A DNA stretch of 64,000 bases from Oikopleura dioica (taxonomy: Eukaryota; Animalia; Chordata). The position numbers and the translations under genes are program-made. The DNA lies in NCBI GenBank assembly GCA_907165135.1, contig OU015569.1, positions 7,192,001-7,256,000 on the forward strand, given 5' to 3'. Numbering within the stretch: the stretch's first letter is position 1; each line of letters starts with the position of its first letter. The notes under the pieces are model-generated. The model made no database searches. It was not told where the DNA came from and worked only from the letters and a program-made list of their open reading frames with translations. Shown here piece by piece: positions 23,701 through 38,660 of this stretch.

Positions 23701-24330
23701 CTTGCTTCCTGCTTTTGAGGCAGAGATCTTTCGTTTTCTCGTCGTCTCATCAATTATGTCATCGTTCTTTAAAGAAATCATTCGTTTGTGCTCAACTTTT
23801 GCCGACACACTTTCTTTCGCCGCGCATTTTAGATCTAAATCGCCATTCTCAGTGATCTCGTTGATTTTTGTTGGTATTGAAAGTCGCAAGTTTGTATCTT
23901 CCTTGCTTGTTTCTACGTCGTCGACGGCTGTTTTCTTTGACCTCTGAGACTTTCGCTTCTTGCTCAATCTGCGCTGGATAAAGCTCTCTTTTTTCTGTAG
24001 CAAGACATCTTCTTTTGATTCTTCTTCTTCGAAATCATCAGGTGGCTTCTGATATGGTTATATACGCATTACGGTTGCTAAATAACAATCATATCAATAA
24101 TGAGCAAATAACTTTTGTTTAACCATATTCTCTACTTTTTCTGGAGTCTGATAAGACTGGCCTGGGAGCCACGAACGGAAAGAGCTCAAGATGGACGAGA
24201 AGTTATTCTTGATGCTTGAACTGTCCACTCCTGAAGAGCCTTTTCTCTCACGTGTCATAATAATTTACTCTTCTCGATCGTATTTGGGAATAGAGAGGAT
24301 GCGCTGTTTTAGAGAAATCATCAAAATAAG
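14760..24330 (-). CDS. One or more long multi-exon genes encoding low-complexity/coiled-coil protein(s), unidentified
   Basis: More than 15 co-oriented minus-strand ORFs (e.g. 23266-24003, 21325-21741, 20374-20739, 19926-20141, 18490-18888, 14907-15170) rich in E/K/R/S/Q with heptad-like stretches, separated by short GT-AG gaps; gene boundaries not resolved. Confidence 0.55.
19584..19736. mobile_element. About 150-bp MITE, TA-flanked (Tc1/mariner-type)
   Basis: TACGCCTGGTCTGGGACGGTC ... GACCGTCCCAAACCAGGGCGTA terminal inverted repeats with TA at both ends; lies in an intron-sized gap between minus-strand exons. Confidence 0.75.
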
Positions 24331-25642
24331 ACAGTCATGCGTAAGATGTGACAAGTCCTTTCCAGGAAAATAATAAGTGCATGATCAGCGCAATCCATGA
24401 ACTTGAGCGTAACGGATTTCATCGCATCCGTAGCTGCAAAGAGATGCATTTGAATATTTTCTAAGTCTGTCGATTGATAATGAATTTGGAATAGGCCACA
24501 AACGACTGCCTCTCGACATTCGGTTATCGAACTCTGGCCGCAAACGGAAGGCTGTCGTCAGCAGAGGCCACTTTCACACCCGCGCACCCTCAAAAGAGGA
24601 TAATTATCAATTTCAAAGGGCGTAATTATGCATAATTTTATGAAAATCTGAACAATTGAATTAGTTTTTCCATTGACACGTTAGCAGTGTCGGTCCGTTT
24701 CTTTCCGGAAACAAGCGTCCTATTATATAGACCCGTCGTGGAAATGATTTTGGGAAATTTGATTATGAGAATTTTCTTAATTCGGAAATGTGAGCAGCAA
24801 ACGATTTGCGTAAGAAACCAGAAACATTTGTCGGACAACTTCTAAATGCGCCTCGTTCTCGGCGACGCTTTGAGCATATCGTGAACATAATTTGATTATC
24901 ACCTCATGACTTGGCCATGTTTTTACAAATGAAATTTCTTCTCATCAAAAGCGATTAGTCGCTAATTTGCCATGTCCAGAATGTAGGAGTCAATGTGCAA
25001 GACGAATCATACGTTTCTTTGTGTTAATGTGGCCCAAATTACATAAAGACACGACTGTCGATCGACCCTCAATCAAAGTTCATTAAAAACTAAATAGCTC
25101 AAGCATTCTAAGATTTTAAGACAGAAAGAACAAAATCAATTTAGCTGTCAGTATTCCATAGACTATGGACGGCCCATAATGATTTATGATAATTTATCAA
25201 TAAACGAAAGCTCTAGACATAAGTTTTATCAAAGTAAAATGTCTTTTCACCGATCGAAAAGCCGGCAGTCTGTTAGACTTAGTATTTAAATTATTATAAA
25301 GAAATTGTAATGTAAGACTTCCAGGAAGACTGACCGACTGTAAATGCAAATGGAACGTGCGCAACAAGGTCTAAAATGTCATGAAAAGCGTTAGACATTG
25401 AGATTTAGTGGGGTAGGCCATGGCCCGACCCGGATGTGGACATCAGTTCTATTCTAATCGTGACAGGGAATGATTTTGGACCGTCATCACGGCCCCGTCA
25501 ATTTAAATATTGAGTGAACCGCCTTTTGCAATAAACCTTAACTTTATCAGGCCATCACTCTGTTCCTCAACAACTGAACAAATCGAGAAGTTAAGCAGAC
25601 GTCATCGGAAAAATCAGCCGACAAAGATTCCTTTGCCATAGA

Positions 25643-28536
25643 TAGGGTGAACGCACAAAAATCAACTTTTTTCTGCAATGTCGGTAGAATTGAAACTTGG
25701 CATGATAAAAGATCATGCAAAAGTTCTTAATTAAATTTTTTTTTCAAGGAATTTTCTCCATGTTTTCAACCTTTTTTGGCTGTCAAAAGATAAAATTGAC
25801 TAGCGAAGCCAGAAAAAAAGGGTTGATAAGTTAAAATCAATTTAGGCTTATTCCTTGGCCCTTTTTACATCTAAAAAATTAGTAACGAAGAAAAAACTCT
25901 AACGGGATCACTTGAAATTTACATTTATAATTCAAAATTTGTTTGTTTTTATCAATGTAGAAGTCCTCCGGAGGACTTTGAACTGTCGGAAGACAAATCA
26001 ATTAAGCTCTTTGAAAACATTTATTTACATTTATAATAAATTGATATAAAATTTAATCACGTGGTCCTTTGGAGGACCTCGGAGGACCTCGGAAGCTGGA
26101 GGAAATTTCCTGCTGGAAGAAAAATATTTTTTTTGCTGAGTTGAGCTAAGCTGAGTTGAGCTTCAAGCAGGGTTAAGCTGAGCAGGAATGAGCTGAGCGG
26201 GCCGTCTCAGCCCCGTTCCTTGATTTTTAATTTAAGGGCTTGACGGCCCTTCGGGCCGTCTCAGCCCCGTTCCTTGATTTTTAATTTAAGGGGCTTGACG
26301 GCCCTTCGGGCCGTCTCAGCCCCGTTCCTTGATTTTTAATTTAAGGGCTTGACGGCCCTTCGGGCCGTCTCAGCCCCGTTCCTTGATTTTTAATTTAAGG
26401 GGCTTGACGGCCCTTCGGGCCGTCTCAGCCCCGTTCCTTGATTTTTAATTTAAGGGGCTTGACGGCCCTTCGGGCCGTCTCAGCCCCGTTCCTTGATTTT
26501 TAATTTAAGGGGCTTGACGGCCCTTCGGGCCGTCTCAGCCCCGTTCCTTGATTTTTAATTTAAGGGGCTTGACGGCCCTTCGGGCCGTCTCAGCCCCGTT
26601 CCTTGATTTTTAATTTAAGGGGCTTGACGGCCCTTCGGGCCGTCTCAGCCCCGTTCCTTGATTTTTAATTTAAGGGCTTGACGGCCCTTCGGGCCGTCTC
26701 AGCCCCGTTCCTTGATTTTTAATTTAAGGGGCTTGACGGCCCTTCGGGCCGTCTCAGCCCCGTTCCTTGATTTTTAATTTAAGGGGCTTGACGGCCCTTC
26801 GGGCCGTCTCAGCCCCGTTCCTTGATTTTTAATTTAAGGGGCTTGACGGCCCTTCGGGCCGTCTCAGCCCCGTTCCTTGATTTTTAATTTAAGGGGCTTG
26901 ACGGCCCTTCGGGCCGTCTCAGCCCCGTTCCTTGATTTTTAATTTAAGGGGCTTGACGGCCCTTCGGGCCGTCTCAGCCCCGTTCCTTGATTTTTAATTT
27001 AAGGGCTTGACGGCCCTTCGGGCCGTCTCAGCCCCGTTCCTTGATTTTTTAATTTAAGGGCTTGACGGCCCTTCGGGCCGTCTCAGCCCCGTTCCTTGAT
27101 TTTTAATTTAAGGGCTTGACGGCCCTTCGGGCCGTCTCAGCCCCGTTCCTTGATTTTAATTTAAGGGCTTGACGGCCCTTCGGGCCGTCTCAGCCCCGTT
27201 CCTTGATTTTTAATTTAAGGGGCTTGACGGCCCTTCGGGCCGTCTCAGCCCCGTTCCTTGATTTTTAATTTAAGGGCTTGACGGCCCTTCGGGCCGTCTC
27301 AGCCCCGTTCCTTGATTTTTAATTTAAGGGGCTTGACGGCCCTTCGGGCCGTCTCAGCCCCGTTCCTTGATTTTTAATTTAAGGGGCTTGACGGCCCTTC
27401 GGGCCGTCTCAGCCCCGTTCCTTGATTTTTAATTTAAGGGGCTTGACGGCCCTTCGGGCCGTCTCAGCCCCGTTCCTTGATTTTTAATTTAAGGGCTTGA
27501 CGGCCCTTCGGGCCGTCTCAGCCCCGTTCCTTGATTTTTAATTTAAGGGGCTTGACGGCCCTTCGGGCCGTCTCAGCCCCGTTCCTTGATTTTTAATTTA
27601 AGGGCTTGACGGCCCTTCGGGCCGTCTCAGCCCCGTTCCTTGATTTTTAATTTAAGGGCTTGACGGCCCTTCGGGCCGTCTCAGCCCCGTTCCTTGATTT
27701 TTAATTTAAGGGGCTTGACGGCCCTTCGGGCCGTCTCAGCCCCGTTCCTTGATTTTTAATTTAAGGGGCTTGACGGCCCTTCGGGCCGTCTCAGCCCCGT
27801 TCCTTGATTTTTAATTTAAGGGCTTGACGGCCCTTCGGGCCGTCTCAGCCCCGTTCCTTGATTTTTAATTTAAGGGCTTGACGGCCCTTCGGGCCGTCTC
27901 AGCCCCGTTCCTTGATTTTTAATTTAAGGGGCTTGACGGCCCTTCGGGCCGTCTCAGCCCCGTTCCTTGATTTTTTAATTTAAGGGGCTTGACAAAGGCC
28001 GGGAAACCTGAGTTGATCAGTCTCAGTTCCGTCCCCAACCCCTCCCACCTCCATCCGATGTAAAAATATATATTTTTCATGTTCAAAGTCTTGTTATGGT
28101 TCTTATCGTTAGTTTTTAAAATAATTTCAATTTGGTCAATGCACATTAGATTCTATGAATTAGAATGATTGATCCACAAGATCTCTCATTCTTCCAGCAA
28201 AAAGTCCTCCGGAGGACCTAATTCCTAGTAAAAAACAAAAAAAATGTTTTAAAATGATGATTGCGGGCCAACCGGGACTCCGTTACTAAATTTTTTGGCT
28301 GGAAAATAATCAGCTCGACACGGCGCGTCGATTAAGCCTACTCACGACTCTTGAGCTTACTTCGCTCGAAAAATAGATTTTTCGGACTTTTCGGTGGCCT
28401 CTAGAATCGCCCGGGGCTTTATAAAATAATTTTTTTGACCAAAAATGTTTTTTAGAGTGTATAAAGAACATATCCTCCAAAAATCAGCCCTTTACTCCCA
28501 CTAGAACTGAATTTGATTTTTTCTGCGTTCACCCTA
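25643..28536. mobile_element. Non-autonomous hAT-type DNA transposon (2894 bp) carrying a minisatellite
   Basis: Perfect 13-bp TIR TAGGGTGAACGCA, extending imperfectly to about 23 bp. Exact 8-bp TSD GCCATAGA at 25635-25642 and 28537-28544. Subterminal symmetry: AAAAAATTAGTAACG / CGTTACTAAATTTTTT, plus a GTCCTCCGGAGGAC palindrome on both sides. No transposase ORF. Confidence 0.9.
26199..27993 (+). repeat. Tandem array of about 33 copies of a 54-55 bp unit
   Basis: Unit GGGCCGTCTCAGCCCCGTTCCTTGATTTTTAATTTAAGG(G)GCTTGACGGCCCTTC; copies differ only in G3/G4 and T4-T6 homopolymer length. Confidence 0.98.
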
Positions 28537-30121
28537 GCCATAGAGGGGGGGCATTTCCGGATCTAGCTATGGATCTCGCGCGATGTGTCGGCGGAAGCGT
28601 TTTGTTCAAGAAAGCGCGATACCATGAAAATCAGAGATTTTCCTCTTAGACGCAAAAATAACAAGAAATCAGCAAGAAGCGCTCACGCAAGAACACGCCG
28701 CAGAAATGCGTGGTGACAACTTTCAAGTTCAGAAAATGCGAAAGGAAATGCGAAATTCACCACGAAATTCTGCATTTGAAGGACCAAAGCGATCCAGTTC
28801 TATTAAATCTCGCTTAAAATTCGTTTTCTTCCGAGTTATTTGCAATTTGGTCTTTCAATAGAGCATTAACTCTCATTAGAGGTTATATTCCGGTCACCTT
28901 AATGTATCATGATTTGCTACGCGTAATTTTACCAGGAGGAAAGCAGTATTTAGAAACTTATGCATTAACTTTACAATTTATCAAAAGCTCGAAATCAATA
29001 CGAATAAAGTAAGTGGCTGTCCACTTCTGTTAATTGCGATTTTTATGTACGCGAGCTACTGTAAAAAGTTGTGAAATGAGTCCAAGTAATCCCCCGGCCA
29101 GTCCAAAGTCTCCCTGGAATGATTTTAATTGATGAAAAAAATACACCTTTAACGATAGAAAACGCATTTGACTTCGAGCTAAATCTGACATGCCACTAAT
29201 GCTCAGGCGTCCTGCTTCTAATGACTCTCCTCATCGAGAAGAATGGCAGTCTAATGTTCTTCTTGTCGCCCTGAGATTTCGACCAAAAGAAACTCGATGA
29301 TCCCTTTTTCACACTAGTATAATACTAGTAGTATTCATAATTCCGAAAAAATATACTTTTTATAAATTTTGGATTGACAATCAAGGATTTCTCGACGGTA
29401 ACCTTTAATTTGACTTAGCATTCTGACCGAAACAATTGATGAAAGTTCGAATAAGATCGCAAATGAAAAGTAAGTAGAGAAATATCATTTAGTATTTATG
29501 TTAAATAAAACTGTTGATCCGGACCTTGGCGGGGAAGGGTAATGGACCCCATTTGCACTCATCATCTTTTTCATGAATCTGGTTTCTTTCGAATCTGCGG
29601 CGAAATCTCTCGGTTGAGCTTCTTGCCTATCTCTCTCTATTGAGTGCCTCGCCACTGGTCACTAGTGTATTCAAAAAGGTTTAGAGATAAAACACAGCCA
29701 CTGTCCAATCGCGCGGACTTTGCCCCAGGCGAGTGAGATATAAAAGTGGCGATTCCTCAGTGGCTTTGCACAGGATTCGTTACACGCTTAGATAACCCAC
29801 TTTTCCCACTCTCCATCTCAGTCCCGAAAAGCCAAAGTCAGGTGCTGATGTCGACCTTTTTTAGTTTTTTAAGACAATATGAAAAGTTGACATCTTTTTC
29901 CCACAGAAATTTAACTCTTAGATTTTAACCTGGAAAAATAGCTTGTCGTTTGAGTTGTTCCCTAATCGTGATGAATTTATCAGAAACAGCCAAGTCGCAG
30001 CCGATTCCAAGTCATCATTATGTCAGAGTTCGACAAACGGGTCTCCACTGATGCTCCAGTTTTAACACAATTTCTAAAACTCGGCTAATTTTCAGTCAAC
30101 TGCAAATGCGACAGTCAATGT

Positions 30122-33310: not shown

Positions 33311-36300
33311 CTATGGTCTTCGCATTCCAGTTATAAAATACAGTTTAGCGTTTTCATTAGCAGTGGCAAATTCGTGTAACAACGAGAACTCCCATTCTTT
33401 GTCGAGGCCAAACTTGCGAATACTCTGACGCAAACGTCCTGAGTCCGCGGCTACCACGACAATCTTTGCTTGTGGGACGAAGGTTAGTGCAGAAAGCTCC
33501 TGAAGAGTTGGAACCGAACTGGCGGCCGGTTGGAGCTCACAAATCACAAGACCAGAATATTGTCGACTTTGGCAAGGGGTCACGCCAAGAATTTGTACGG
33601 GAACTTGAGCTCCGAAATTTATGTATTTCCCGGAGATGAGAACAGGGCGTGTTGCGCTCGCATCCGTGAAGATACTTCTGCCTTCATGCTTGAAATACTG
33701 ATTCAGCAGATAGAATCCGGGCGCTGAATTAATTATTGATATCCCCGAAAATTATTTGGTGCTTACCGTTTATGTTTTCAGAGTCTTCTTCTGTGGTGAC
33801 ATACTTCGAGACGGGCACTGAAATCTCGAACGGGGGAACTGGAGCTTTGTGATTATGTTTCTCGATATAGCCATAGTTTTCAAGGACAATGCAGCTGTTT
33901 CCGGCAGCGACTTGACGAAGACTTTATTTGTATCAATAATGTGAAAAATCTCAGAGAGAATTTCGACTAATAGTTTTTGAAAGAACTCTAAATATCTTTT
34001 TGATACATTCCAGAAATCAATATCTTCGCCTTCATATTTACTATGATCCATAGAAATATTATTGTACTTTAGGTTGAGCATGTAGCAGCCTTGAACGAGT
34101 CGATTTGAAAATTGACGATCATCTGGTGGCTGACCATCAGCAGTGGTCCAAGGTTTAAGCCCTAGCATCGCCACTTCCGTCTCGGAATTGGAGATCATTG
34201 ATTCTAAGTCGAGCAAAACATCGTGCAGCGGGATAGGATCCCAGGAGCGTGATTCGCTGCTCCACGAGCGAAATTGCGCCACCTGGTCGGAGAGAAAGAA
34301 AACAAACGGCCAACAGTCTGGGGGCGAGAGAGCCCAGGAGTGCTGTAAAAGACGCAGAGCGAAGAGTTTCATGCAGCCGATTCCATGCCTGTTAAACTCT
34401 GCGCCCATGACGAGAAGACAGGAGTTAGGCCAGTATTCTATGTGCGAATAAATACAAAATACAAAGGATATAGTCTATATCATATAGAACTAACCTCGAT
34501 ATTTTTGCACATCGTTATGCTTCACAACTATGAGATGAGTGAATTCGGAATCGCTCATTTTCATCGTCTTCTTGAGATCGTATAGTCCATTTTGAGCACC
34601 AGAAACGCCAAAACTAACGACGATTGTTTTAGGCGAAGGGGATTGTGTACGAGAAGAAGCAACTGCAAGTCTCACTGCTTTTAGTCCATTTGCATCATTC
34701 ATTCCACCAAACTCGAAACGTCTTCGTTTGTCATTCGGGATGACGATCTCAACCTAATTAAAATGATAATGAGCACAATTATTAACTTTTACCGTCACTG
34801 CATTCGGTCCTAGCTGAGGAATATTCAGTTCAATTGGCCAAGGAACTATTGGCTCCACATTTTCTATTCGCGACGAGCTTCCGCTTATCGAAACTTCACC
34901 AAGTTCGATTGTTGCTTTTTTCGATTCTTCCATTTCAAGCTCTGTTCTTCGATTGATGTATTCTAACGCATGATCATCGTTTAGTGTGTTCATGATTGGA
35001 CTAAGCCCAAAATCTTGCTTTCTCAGTAATGCGAAATTTGGACCCGTGATATTGAGATTAAGTTCAGGATCATCTATGATGTTGATAGAGAACTGCGATT
35101 GAATCTGATGATTGAGGGTCGATGCTAAAAATATATGGTTCAATAAAGGACGAGTAAAATATCCAACCTAGCTCAAAGGCGCACGTGATCTGATTGAAAC
35201 CAACAGGTGTCACCAGCAGAAAATTATTTTCTCTTTTCTCCAATTCTTCTTTGTGGATACACGTTGAATAATAGTATTTGTAGAGATAGTCCATTTCGAT
35301 CCTTTCTGGTTCCAAAGAAAGCGTCTCCGGCATTCTGGCACATCTCTCCGAAGGGGTTAGATTCTGGAAATCGAAGCCACGTTTTCCACGGAAGACGTCA
35401 AAAGATTCACTGGACAAGAGTACGCGTGGAGGCTTTCGTATTGATTCAAAGTCGATCATATAATCGGAGTCATCTACTTTTAGACGTTTTTCAGGTGAAC
35501 ATTCGTCGTCAGAAGACATTGAGTCCCCTGAGCGCTTGATCATTCCCAATCCGGCAATCGCCATAAGTTCGTCACGAGTTCTGCTTGATTTTTCTTCATG
35601 AAACAGGTTGCAAAATGGAATTCATCTTCAATTTCCTTTCTTGTGAAAAAGCCCGTGAGCATAAGGCGGCAGTCGACGTAGGCAAATAATGGCACTCTAT
35701 ATTTTTGTCATTAACAGTCGTAGTTTTACTTTTACCTAGTAGGAGTCATTCCACTTATCGTGTCATAATGAACGATAATGATTGGTTTATTGGCAAGTTC
35801 TATGATGTCGCGACATTGATAACTTTGTGAGAATCCAATTGCTTTTTTCGATGCGTCGTTCATTTGAATACCACTTTTATCCCAAATAGCAACACCCACT
35901 TTCGCGACTTCGTAAAGTTTTTCATATATCTGAGTTTTATTGAATGGGCAAGTTTTGTTTTGTGTATGATGGTGAAAACCTTCCTTGGAAATTTTGTCTA
36001 GAAAGCGCTGCATTGAGAGTGTCGTAGGCGGTAGTGGCAAAGTTGATGTCTCTCACTCTGAGCAAAACTGGACGTTTTTGGTAGACAACTTGACGAAGAA
36101 GCTCAAGTGAACGAGGATCAACACTTTCATAGAGTCCACTATGCTCAATGCTGAGGAGAGCGGAAATATAGCACAAGTCGAGGAGCACCACCATACGGAC
36201 GAAGTCAGCATTCGCGGATGTAGTCTTCAGATAAAGACTTCAAAAAGGATTAACAATAAATTATTGTCAATAATGTATCGTTATTAACTCAAAATTAGTA

Positions 36301-38660
36301 ATCAACAAGTAAGCTTTCTATTGAAATCAAGGAAGAGTTCAATCCTTTAACTATATAGATTTTCGAATTCTGGAGACGCAGAAACAGTGGGAGTGTCAGT
36401 CGACAGCGACTTTAAGTGGCTTCTAAAATCGTATGAGGCAGTAGAAAGACCATCAGTCAGCGGAGGGACAATGACGTTATTTGATGGAACTGGAGAGCCC
36501 TTCGCAAATAGTTCATACGGTCGAATACCGAAGTATGTAACCATAACTTGTGCGCGTTGAGAAAGTAAATCTAGGCGTTTGAAAACTTCGAAGTTGTAGT
36601 CCTAAACACAGATGCCTAGCTAGCATTATTTAAAATATTACCTCTGAGTTGACGCCCAATATAAAGAAATTGAACAAAGTTGTTGGATGTTTGTCGATGT
36701 ACTCAACGATACCAGAAAATGCTCTTTCGAAAACTGAAATGCTCAAAACTTCTGGGCTTTGGGTTGGCGATATCTCTTGCATTTTCGTCACGTGCTGATC
36801 ATCTGGGACAATAAACATGCCATGGAAGCATTTGAATCTCTCTAGATCGGTTCCGTAGCATCGATTGAAAGACTCGGCAAATAATTCACAGGTCTTGGCT
36901 ACCATTTCGCCATCGAATGCTTCTCGTGAGGAGGAATCCATTACTTCGAGGATGACTTGTTCCGCTCCTGGTTCAAGTTTAGGTAAAACTGCTTTCGGTG
37001 CATCAGACACTTGAGGAAGTAAGGAATGAATTTCGCTTTTTAGAGCAAGAATCTCTGCAGAAGTTGAAAGCTCGTGAACATCTATCGGAGCTTCATTCTC
37101 CAGACTCGTAATAATTTTCTCCGACGTAGAAAGAACCAAAAATTCTTTTCTTGGACCTTGATAGATGCACAGTATGAATTGTGGTCTGAGAGAATCTTCT
37201 ACAGAAGAAAGTAGTCTGAGAGCGTCTTCGACACAATGAGACATTGATTGTTCAGAGGTCATCACTTTCACAGGTTCCCAACATAAAATAAGACTATTAC
37301 TAGTCTAGACTATGAGATTGAACTTTCTTAATCTTTAAAGAGTATGGAAAGCCATTCCTTTGACCCCAGATGCAGTGGCAGAAACAATATGACTTATACT
37401 CATCAGCATATTCGGAAATAAAATACCGCTTAAATTTATGATAGAAATCCAATCAAAGCCTTATTTTCTACCTGTCGAGTGTACGTTGAACTTCTGGAAC
37501 TGTTTTTGAGAAAGTACGCCGAATTTGCTCCTGTCGAAGAAGAGAGCCTTTCTGCAGTTGACATATTTCATAACAAGTGAGGAAAATCATGCATTCGCGG
37601 GTGAAAATAGTACGGGCTGTTGTGGAGAAATCGAAGCAGCTTTGAAGGTAGTTGGATTCAAGAAGGGTTCCATAGCTATCTTCATAACTTAACTGGCTTC
37701 CCGTACAGTTGAGTAAAGCCACGTGGCCGCGCGGTCGACCAGCTTTTGAAGAGGATTTCAATTTTGTTAGACGCAAATATACTCATTCGTTTTAGAATAA
37801 ATAATCAAATGGATATTCAGCTGTCAAGTAAAATCCTGGCCTAAAATACCTTCGGGAACTTCAATGACACGCTGTATTGGGTTAATTTCCGCCGGTGATT
37901 CCATCGGCGCGATTTGATCAGGCATTTGCTGTTCGACGTCGTTTCCTGCTGGAGGTCTCACTCCCATGCTACCCCGTGACGGAGATTCCGCAATGGTCAA
38001 CTGCGAGCTTCGGCTTTGCGACCAAGGAATCCTCACCAAAAGATCTGCTCTGATCAACATGCTATCAGAGTCCATCTGTCCATAGTACTGGAAAACATGT
38101 TCTTTTGGAAAATTGAGATTGATTCGGAAATGCTCGCAAAATTCGGCGTAGCTAGCCAAATGTCGTCCGCAACCGACACATTTTGCTTGAAAATTGCTCA
38201 TCGAATCTGGAGGGTCGTCTGAAGGAATAACATGGCTCTCCTGTACCAAAACGACGCAAAGAGGCCCGTCCGGATCCGCTTGGGTGAGGATGGCTGTCAG
38301 CATCCACCCATTCGGAATAGTTGATTGAATCGGGTTCCGCTCAAAATGGCTCAGTCGGACATTTGCGTTGCCGGAACACCTGTTTCCGGTTCTCAAATTT
38401 GATAATCAGAATATTCAAATTCGCTTGATCAATTGCACGATGACTAACTTCGTAAATTTAGAACCGTTTTCCTGTGCGAGTCTAGGCCACTTTCCAGAAG
38501 TAAATCTGTGAATATTGTGACGGCAGTAGAGCCAGGTCGCCGAAGCGACTCCTCGATCGAGTTCTTCAATAATTCTTCAAACATTTCTTTCGGATCCAGG
38601 TCAAATGCGGCTATATCCAAAGAACGATGGTCCGGAGGGTGCGCTAGAATTTATTTTTCT
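33311..38660 (-). CDS. GREB1L: GREB1/GREB1-like protein, full length, with C-terminal TAGT-family glycosyltransferase domain
   Basis: Collinear matches to the remembered vertebrate GREB1 sequence: MFEELLKNSIEESLR (GREB1 RFEEVLHNSIEASLR); KCVGCGRHLASYAEFCEHF (NCVGCGKKGFCYFTEFSNH); HPTTLF (NPHTLF); VLLRVRDINFATTAYDTL (VLLRVPCSPLAVVAYERL); HLIVVK...YWPNSCLLVM...GIG; WPFVFF; MLGLKPW; EDIDF; LRQSIRKFGLDKEWEFSLLHEFATAN...YFITG ([26 protein letters not shown]...FFLTG). GREB1 versus GREB1L cannot be resolved, and the start codon is uncertain. Confidence 0.9.

Follow-up and report, generated by a model that had tools for sequence, protein, structure and literature searches.

Positions 25643-28536 of a 64,000-nucleotide stretch of Oikopleura dioica DNA (C2:7192001-7256000, from contig OU015569.1 of assembly GCA_907165135.1; hereafter the window) hold a 2,894-bp element enclosed by a target site duplication (TSD) and terminal inverted repeats (TIRs), which we interpret as a non-autonomous transposon of the hAT superfamily with a tandem array of hairpin units as its cargo. 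Animal proteins are encoded in the window, namely collagen, a protein of GREB1/TAGT type and a LARGE-type glycosyltransferase. The surroundings of the element itself are poor in open reading frames (ORFs), the closest long one ending at 24003, and a Pfam search of the ORFs inside or beside the element returned no match. Genome searches covered 64,281,565 bases in 19 contigs and the comparisons between loci are based on about 250 kb of genome sequence (loci L001-L079); counts obtained by pattern search are either minimum values or vary with the number of mismatches allowed. The OKI2018_I69 assembly of O. dioica is Nanopore-based and comprises 64.3 Mbp in 19 scaffolds, five of them megabase-scale, and the paper that presents it puts the tandem repeats at 1.4-2.6 Mbp and reports no centromeric satellite; the repeat of the element is not described there (PMC8008620). 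No description of the hairpin repeat in Oikopleura turned up in a literature search.

The boundaries of the element can be read directly from the sequence. The octamer GCCATAGA occupies 25635-25642 and recurs at 28537-28544 (no strand being assigned to either copy); for a given pair of positions, an 8/8 match has a chance probability of 1.5e-5. Immediately inside are the left TIR (25643-25661, plus strand), which begins TAGGGTGAACGCA, and the right TIR (28518-28536, minus strand), the two agreeing at 13/13 positions exactly and at 18/19 without gaps once the right one is reverse-complemented. In the alignment with a second copy of the element, located at C1:4347559-4350777 and here called the sister copy, homology starts at base 1 of the left TIR and stops at the last base of the right TIR. 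The left arm (25643-26134, plus strand) is 94% identical to its counterpart in the sister copy over 477 bp and the right arm (28129-28536, plus strand) is 96% identical. GGAGGAC and CTGGAAG motifs are found subterminally in the left arm and recur in the arms of several of the other transposon families described below. The palindrome GTCCTCCGGAGGAC is mirrored, lying at 25963-25976 in the left arm and at 28204-28217 in the right arm (320 and 319 bp from the respective ends), with a degenerate copy at 26064-26077 in the left arm; within the 64-kb window it is confined to the element, with six strand-matches against 0.75 expected and 0/100 shuffles. The subterminal motifs of both arms are, as judged from their sequence and placement, candidate transposase binding sites. 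Both 500-bp flanks of the element are single-copy in the genome, so an insertion nested in another repeat is rejected.

Transposons of the hAT superfamily are recognized by an 8-bp TSD and by short TIRs that begin (C/T)A(G/A)NG. The element has such a TSD and TAGGG-type TIRs, together with repeated subterminal motifs and homologous copies that end at the TIRs, and it also agrees with a tandem-repeat-carrying non-autonomous transposon in having an array between two arms, a variable number of units and a repeat that is dispersed genome-wide. Two other classes were considered and rejected. [quoted passage not shown] Helitrons and Helentrons lack a TSD, have 5'-TC at one end, 3'-CTRR and a 3' hairpin at the other, and insert at AT or TT; membership in this group is rejected on account of the TIRs and the 8-bp TSD.

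The tandem array occupies 26198-27993 (plus strand) and makes up 62.06% of the element. Tandem Repeats Finder (TRF) resolves it at a period of 55 into 32.9 copies with 98% matches, the units being 54-55 bp long. Each unit consists of a GC-rich hairpin and an AT-rich spacer of about 21 nt. Folded as single-stranded DNA, it forms a stem of 13 bp with interruptions, closed by a loop of 3 nt (dG -15.2 kcal/mol; z relative to shuffles, -5.2). Differences among the 32 full units are confined to the lengths of homopolymers (G3/G4 and T4-T6), no substitution being present; since the assembly is Nanopore-based, these differences may be sequencing noise, and the real array is perhaps even more uniform. 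The original prediction, drawn from the letters of the window, had proposed an exact 8-bp TSD, TAGGG-starting TIRs, mirrored subterminal motifs and about 33 hairpin units filling 62% of the element, and in all these points it was borne out. A higher-order repeat was rejected, as the additional TRF periods, 109 and 164 bp, are each a multiple of the unit length of 55 bp, and the G3 and G4 unit types follow each other irregularly along the array. A CRISPR-like array was also rejected, its would-be spacers being identical across the array and not unique, as was a structured RNA gene, for which Rfam gave purD alone (E = 0.67, under the gathering score). A GCTGAG-type minisatellite of 10-17 bp (26135-26197, plus strand; repeat family D1) separates the left arm from the array. 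It is missing from the sister copy, where the arm runs straight into the array, and related short arrays were seen at two further loci (C1:3164325-3164494 and C4:4751687-4751777).

Four elements with TAGGGTGAACGCA-type ends were found in the genome, two of them close copies (the element in the window and the sister copy) and two distant ones. The original prediction had staked its case on the arms occurring elsewhere with a different TSD, and the sister copy has exactly this property: it is 3,219 bp long, is flanked by ATAATATA and aligns with the element in the window from the first base to the last, its interior holding 39-40 units of a private 56-bp variant (with one extra spacer G) followed by the same tail, and the junctions between array and arms agree in the two copies. 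Regarding the age of the insertion, the intact TSD and TIRs are weakly in keeping with the recent event that had also been proposed; the 4-6% divergence from the nearest copy speaks against it, and the uniformity of the units, which had been taken as a further sign, reflects turnover within the array rather than the age of the insertion.

The repeat is by no means restricted to these two copies. With up to two mismatches allowed, a 28-nt core taken from the unit is matched no fewer than 3,437 times in the genome, against none for a reversed-pattern control, and the matches are spread over all five large scaffolds. Directly downstream of the array lies a conserved tail (27994-28128, plus strand; core GTCCCCAACCCC.CCCACC), which is found at 80-90% identity at no fewer than 40 other loci; in all of the 30 or more loci sampled, this tail of about 125-135 bp directly abuts an array in the same orientation. 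The tail core has about 182 copies in the genome (none for the reversed pattern), and dividing the units by the tails gives an average of about 19 units per cassette, by which we mean an array together with its tail. No conserved head was found to the left of the arrays across the sampled loci, and the arrays start at either of two phases of the unit, both of which recur. The extent of the shared tail varies: in the element's own family and in f5 the similarity ends at about 125-135 bp, and in families f3 and f4 as well as several other loci it extends to about 230 bp and takes in a second hairpin. About one third of the first 100 tail matches listed fall on C3, where the highest coordinate seen is about 2.4 Mb, less than 5% of the genome; C3 may be the repeat-rich Y-specific scaffold.

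A search of the sampled loci for YAGRG-type ends with matching 8-bp flanks yielded, once chance pairs were set aside, 13 complete cassette-bearing elements, each with an exact 8-bp TSD, all of these different, and with 0-40 units. They belong to five TIR families, namely TAGGGTGAACGCA (the family of the element in the window), TAGGGTTCGCAC, TAGGGCTGCCAC, CAGAGTTCGAAATT and TAGGGTGAATTTAC, and the TIRs of related carrier families begin TAGGGT, TAGGGC or CAGAGT. Further paired ends are so placed as to suggest that no fewer than two additional families, TAGGGTAAACGCA and TAGGGCTTCCGTAT, bear the cassette. In every complete carrier the cassette lies centrally. These carriers and the sister copy uphold the proposal of a non-autonomous hAT-type element with a satellite as its cargo, that is, a mobile satellite cassette. 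The accompanying remark that non-autonomous elements can seed satellites does not apply to this locus, given that the units and cassettes counted above are common to unrelated hAT-like families. At two loci on C3 (L031 and L046; C3:105651-108773 and C3:732316-735428), two short arrays abut a coiled-coil-like coding sequence, of KEKKALQEDDQ type and resembling a myosin tail, which is duplicated between the loci; the sequence could be part of a gene that was captured, or else disrupted, beside the cassette.

The history of the cassette does not follow that of the arms. Relative to the element in the window, the TAGGGTGAATTTAC family has a tail of 89-90% identity and arms that align only terminally (about 130 bp on the left and 250 bp on the right, at 66-78%), and the TAGGGCTGCCAC and CAGAGTTCGAAATT families each have a tail of 81% identity and arms without detectable similarity. 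The 991-bp copy at C1:4637303-4638293, one of the two distant members of the element's own family, has a tail of just 70% identity and arms of 78-81% identity. Furthermore, the array in the window shares its exact unit variant with an array in the TAGGGTTCGCAC family (C1:7179230), and the sister copy has another variant. As similarity of the tails does not track similarity of the arms, the cassette has passed between carriers.

We therefore contend, with a probability that we put at roughly 0.85, that the element in the window is a non-coding, non-autonomous hAT-superfamily transposon in unique, ORF-poor DNA, and that its hairpin array and tail are cargo exchanged among hAT-like families. In such a scheme, the arms would supply what a transposase acting in trans needs, namely the TAGGG-type TIRs, the subterminal motifs and the symmetric palindrome, and the array with its tail would be passive cargo that moves with whichever element contains the cassette. 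Copying between unrelated hAT-like families may have occurred by recombination, or by a switch of template while the double-strand gap that excision leaves was being repaired. The invariably internal position of the cassette, its lack of ends or TSDs of its own and its variable right limit favor recombination between arrays or template switching in gap repair, and exchange probably took one of these routes.

A different explanation for the same incongruence is that the cassette is, or was, an independent mobile element which inserted separately into each carrier, so that the locus in the window would be a nested insertion. The cassette is indeed common to carriers whose arms cannot be aligned (at 77-90%), its tail starts at a fixed junction with the array, and the left edge of the array is found at only two recurrent phases in different carriers. 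However, the edges of the cassette show neither terminal repeats nor target duplications of their own, the left side lacks a conserved head, and the right limit of the shared tail differs between the element's family and f5 on the one hand and f3 and f4 on the other. In addition, the central position in all complete carriers suits gap repair or recombination better than random nesting, and we consider an independent element unlikely.

It can also be asked whether the satellite was born within the TAGGGTGAACGCA family, through tandem duplication of internal sequence, and spread from there. The two distant members of the family bear on this point; compared with the element in the window, identity to them is 72-74% over the left arm and 75-80% over the right arm. 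The 991-bp copy, which has no clean TSD and whose arms are 74-75% identical when the copies of the family are compared, lacks an array and carries exactly one unit-equivalent (a proto-unit) followed by the tail, at the position where the array would be, which speaks for such a birth. Its tail, however, is the most divergent of all, whereas the tail in the window is 81-90% identical to those of unrelated families, the unit variant in the window recurs unchanged in a different TIR family, and a single unit could equally represent a collapsed array. An origin in this family is accordingly quite improbable. The tail of the 991-bp copy was also compared with the TAGGGTAAACGCA family's 'variant B' cassettes and does not group with them, its identity to everything being about 70%.

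The second distant member (C5:6063899-6068526) is 4,628 bp long, is flanked by the TSD CCTATATT and has arms of 72-80% identity to the element in the window. Its interior differs altogether, consisting of another array, with a 57-bp unit, in two inverted halves that form a palindrome, and of 127-bp repeats. The layout, which was read from L022:1501-3386 and L003:1-1993 with the central 757 bp lying outside the sequence compared, is foldback-like, the 127-bp GGAGGAC-rich repeats being mirrored and the array of about 42 units of 57 bp running in opposite orientations from the two sides. The 57-bp unit was compared with the 55-bp unit as a possible relative; with rotation, the best alignment reaches a score of 28, whereas shuffles average 2.4 and peak at 21, a result that is no more than suggestive and on which we do not rely. 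This member was also considered as an autonomous partner of the element and rejected, since its ORFs are derived from the repeats and do not encode a transposase.

The arrays themselves reveal how the units change. Among 27 arrays, each is nearly uniform and each has its own spacer variant. In the alignment of the 27 consensus units, variable columns number 1/30 in the stem and bulge, 15/23 in the spacer and 3/3 in the loop (stem versus spacer, Fisher p = 1e-6), and the sole variable column of the stem and bulge is a C/T change that preserves a G-T pair. Given that arrays are uniform within arms which have diverged by 4-6%, turnover occurs at the locus. Repair of double-strand breaks through tandem repeats is a process that expands and contracts them, and we infer that break repair of this kind drives turnover in these arrays. 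The number of units may shift at each locus by slippage, by unequal exchange or as gaps are repaired through the repeats, and such turnover would keep every array uniform, each with its own spacer variant. If only hairpin-competent units amplify and come to dominate the arrays, the constancy of the stem would find its most economical account.

In one unit lineage, found in TAGGGTAAACGCA carriers (L005 and L009; C4:6737821-6740971 and C4:8243478-8246614), the loop is exactly inverted, from TTC to GAA, with the stem unchanged. From its sequence, this inversion looks like a footprint of template switching inside an extruded hairpin. In the same two carriers, the cassette is reversed relative to an arm that resembles the left arm of the element in the window.

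Conservation of the hairpin might alternatively point to a function of the array for the host or the element, for instance as a site of replication pausing or of recombination, a chromatin boundary, a source of small RNA or a cis enhancer of transposition. An almost invariant stem over 27 independently homogenized arrays with a variable spacer speaks for such a function, and the inverted loop is expected if the hairpin really extrudes. Against this, members of the family exist without the array or with another one, which indicates that the array is dispensable for mobility, Rfam gave no credible match, and amplification bias by itself can account for the conservation; a function of this kind is thus very doubtful. 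It can further be speculated, as something of a long shot, that the hairpin core is kept by selection beyond amplification bias, and that about 180 near-identical extrudable arrays on active hATs would act as fork-pausing or recombination-prone sites, which would promote, through template switching, transfer of copies of the cassette to new transposon families and would furnish scattered homology that contributes to the extreme rearrangement of chromosomes reported between lineages of O. dioica.

The array could, in principle, be an assembly artefact, with the repeat mis-collapsed or inflated, as the assembly is Nanopore-based (PMC8008620) and the units differ in homopolymer lengths only. Nevertheless, dozens of arrays are found at unique loci, each with its own fixed spacer variant, an array of 1.8 kb is far below the typical length of a long read, and the junctions to both arms are those seen in the sister copy. 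We regard an artefact as extremely improbable.

Returning to the reading of the element as a non-autonomous hAT with an exchanged cassette, several observations weigh against it. The hAT superfamily has a TSD preference of nTnnnnAn, to which the TSDs observed here show no clear fit. The hAT dimerisation domain PF05699 was found at nine loci in the genome, seven of them with an identical score; in a scan for degenerate TIRs, the four such loci on C1 had no flanking TAGGGYK...YAAA ends, and no transposase has been linked to the ends of the element. In metagenome contigs, an exact-match scan for the empty site (a single GCCATAGA) and a scan for the repeat each returned 0, an uninformative result. 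The unit count of the array comes from one Nanopore-based assembly, and the route of transfer between carriers is deduced from incongruent similarities alone. A search for PF14372 gave no match in the genome, the control genomes being likewise silent. On C1, ORFs with the hAT dimerisation domain (an open frame of 177 aa) occur in pairs about 4.86 kb apart at two sites, C1:636914-641973 and C1:732634-737685, which are about 96 kb from each other and have identical scores; this arrangement points to either a transposase-bearing unit or a domesticated gene having recently been duplicated.

Comparable systems are known from other organisms. Non-autonomous hATs, both Ds-like elements and hAT MITEs such as 'mar' of Drosophila, resemble the element in the window in their 8-bp TSD, short YARNG (TAGGG) TIRs, subterminal repeats, lack of coding capacity and copies with other TSDs; the element differs from them in its length of 2.9 kb, too long for a MITE, and in the 62% taken up by a tandem hairpin array. 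Foldback types such as Tetris of Drosophila virilis are similar to the 4.6-kb member on C5, with its long inverted arms of 127-bp and 57-bp repeats, whereas the element in the window has inverted ends of 19 bp and a unidirectional array and is not a foldback element. The spreading of transposon-borne tandem repeats as satellite-like arrays is well described in frogs, bivalves including oyster, and Drosophila (PMC9659126). Xenopus miDNA4 and Xstir/Xmix and the bivalve pearl/CvA elements likewise hold a satellite-like array inside an element with TIRs, with variable copy number, dispersal by the carrier and local homogenization (PMC9659126). In contrast to the miDNA4, Xstir and pearl repeats, each tied to one carrier family (Tc1/mariner-like or pearl), the Oikopleura cassette with its fixed tail is found in at least five hAT-like families with unrelated arms. 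The CgHINE Helentrons of Crassostrea gigas and DINE-TR1 of Drosophila are similar in having central tandem repeats and many short euchromatic satellite-like arrays (PMC9659126), but they are rolling-circle elements without the TIRs and the 8-bp TSD seen here.

The phenomenon is therefore already known and current understanding of it is unchanged; what is unusual is the number of unrelated carriers that share one cassette. The locus offers a clean and fully bounded case in which a satellite array is moved by a cut-and-paste transposon whose paralogue differs in target site and unit number, in a host whose genome is among the most compact in animals. With its shared carriers, invariant stem, free spacer and separately homogenized arrays, the cassette system is useful for studying the spread and uniformity of satellites.

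Downstream of the element, the window contains a gene of the GREB1 family, with ORFs at 33311-38660 that encode a TAGT domain (Pfam E = 8e-25) and a GREB1_N domain (Pfam E = 1e-7).

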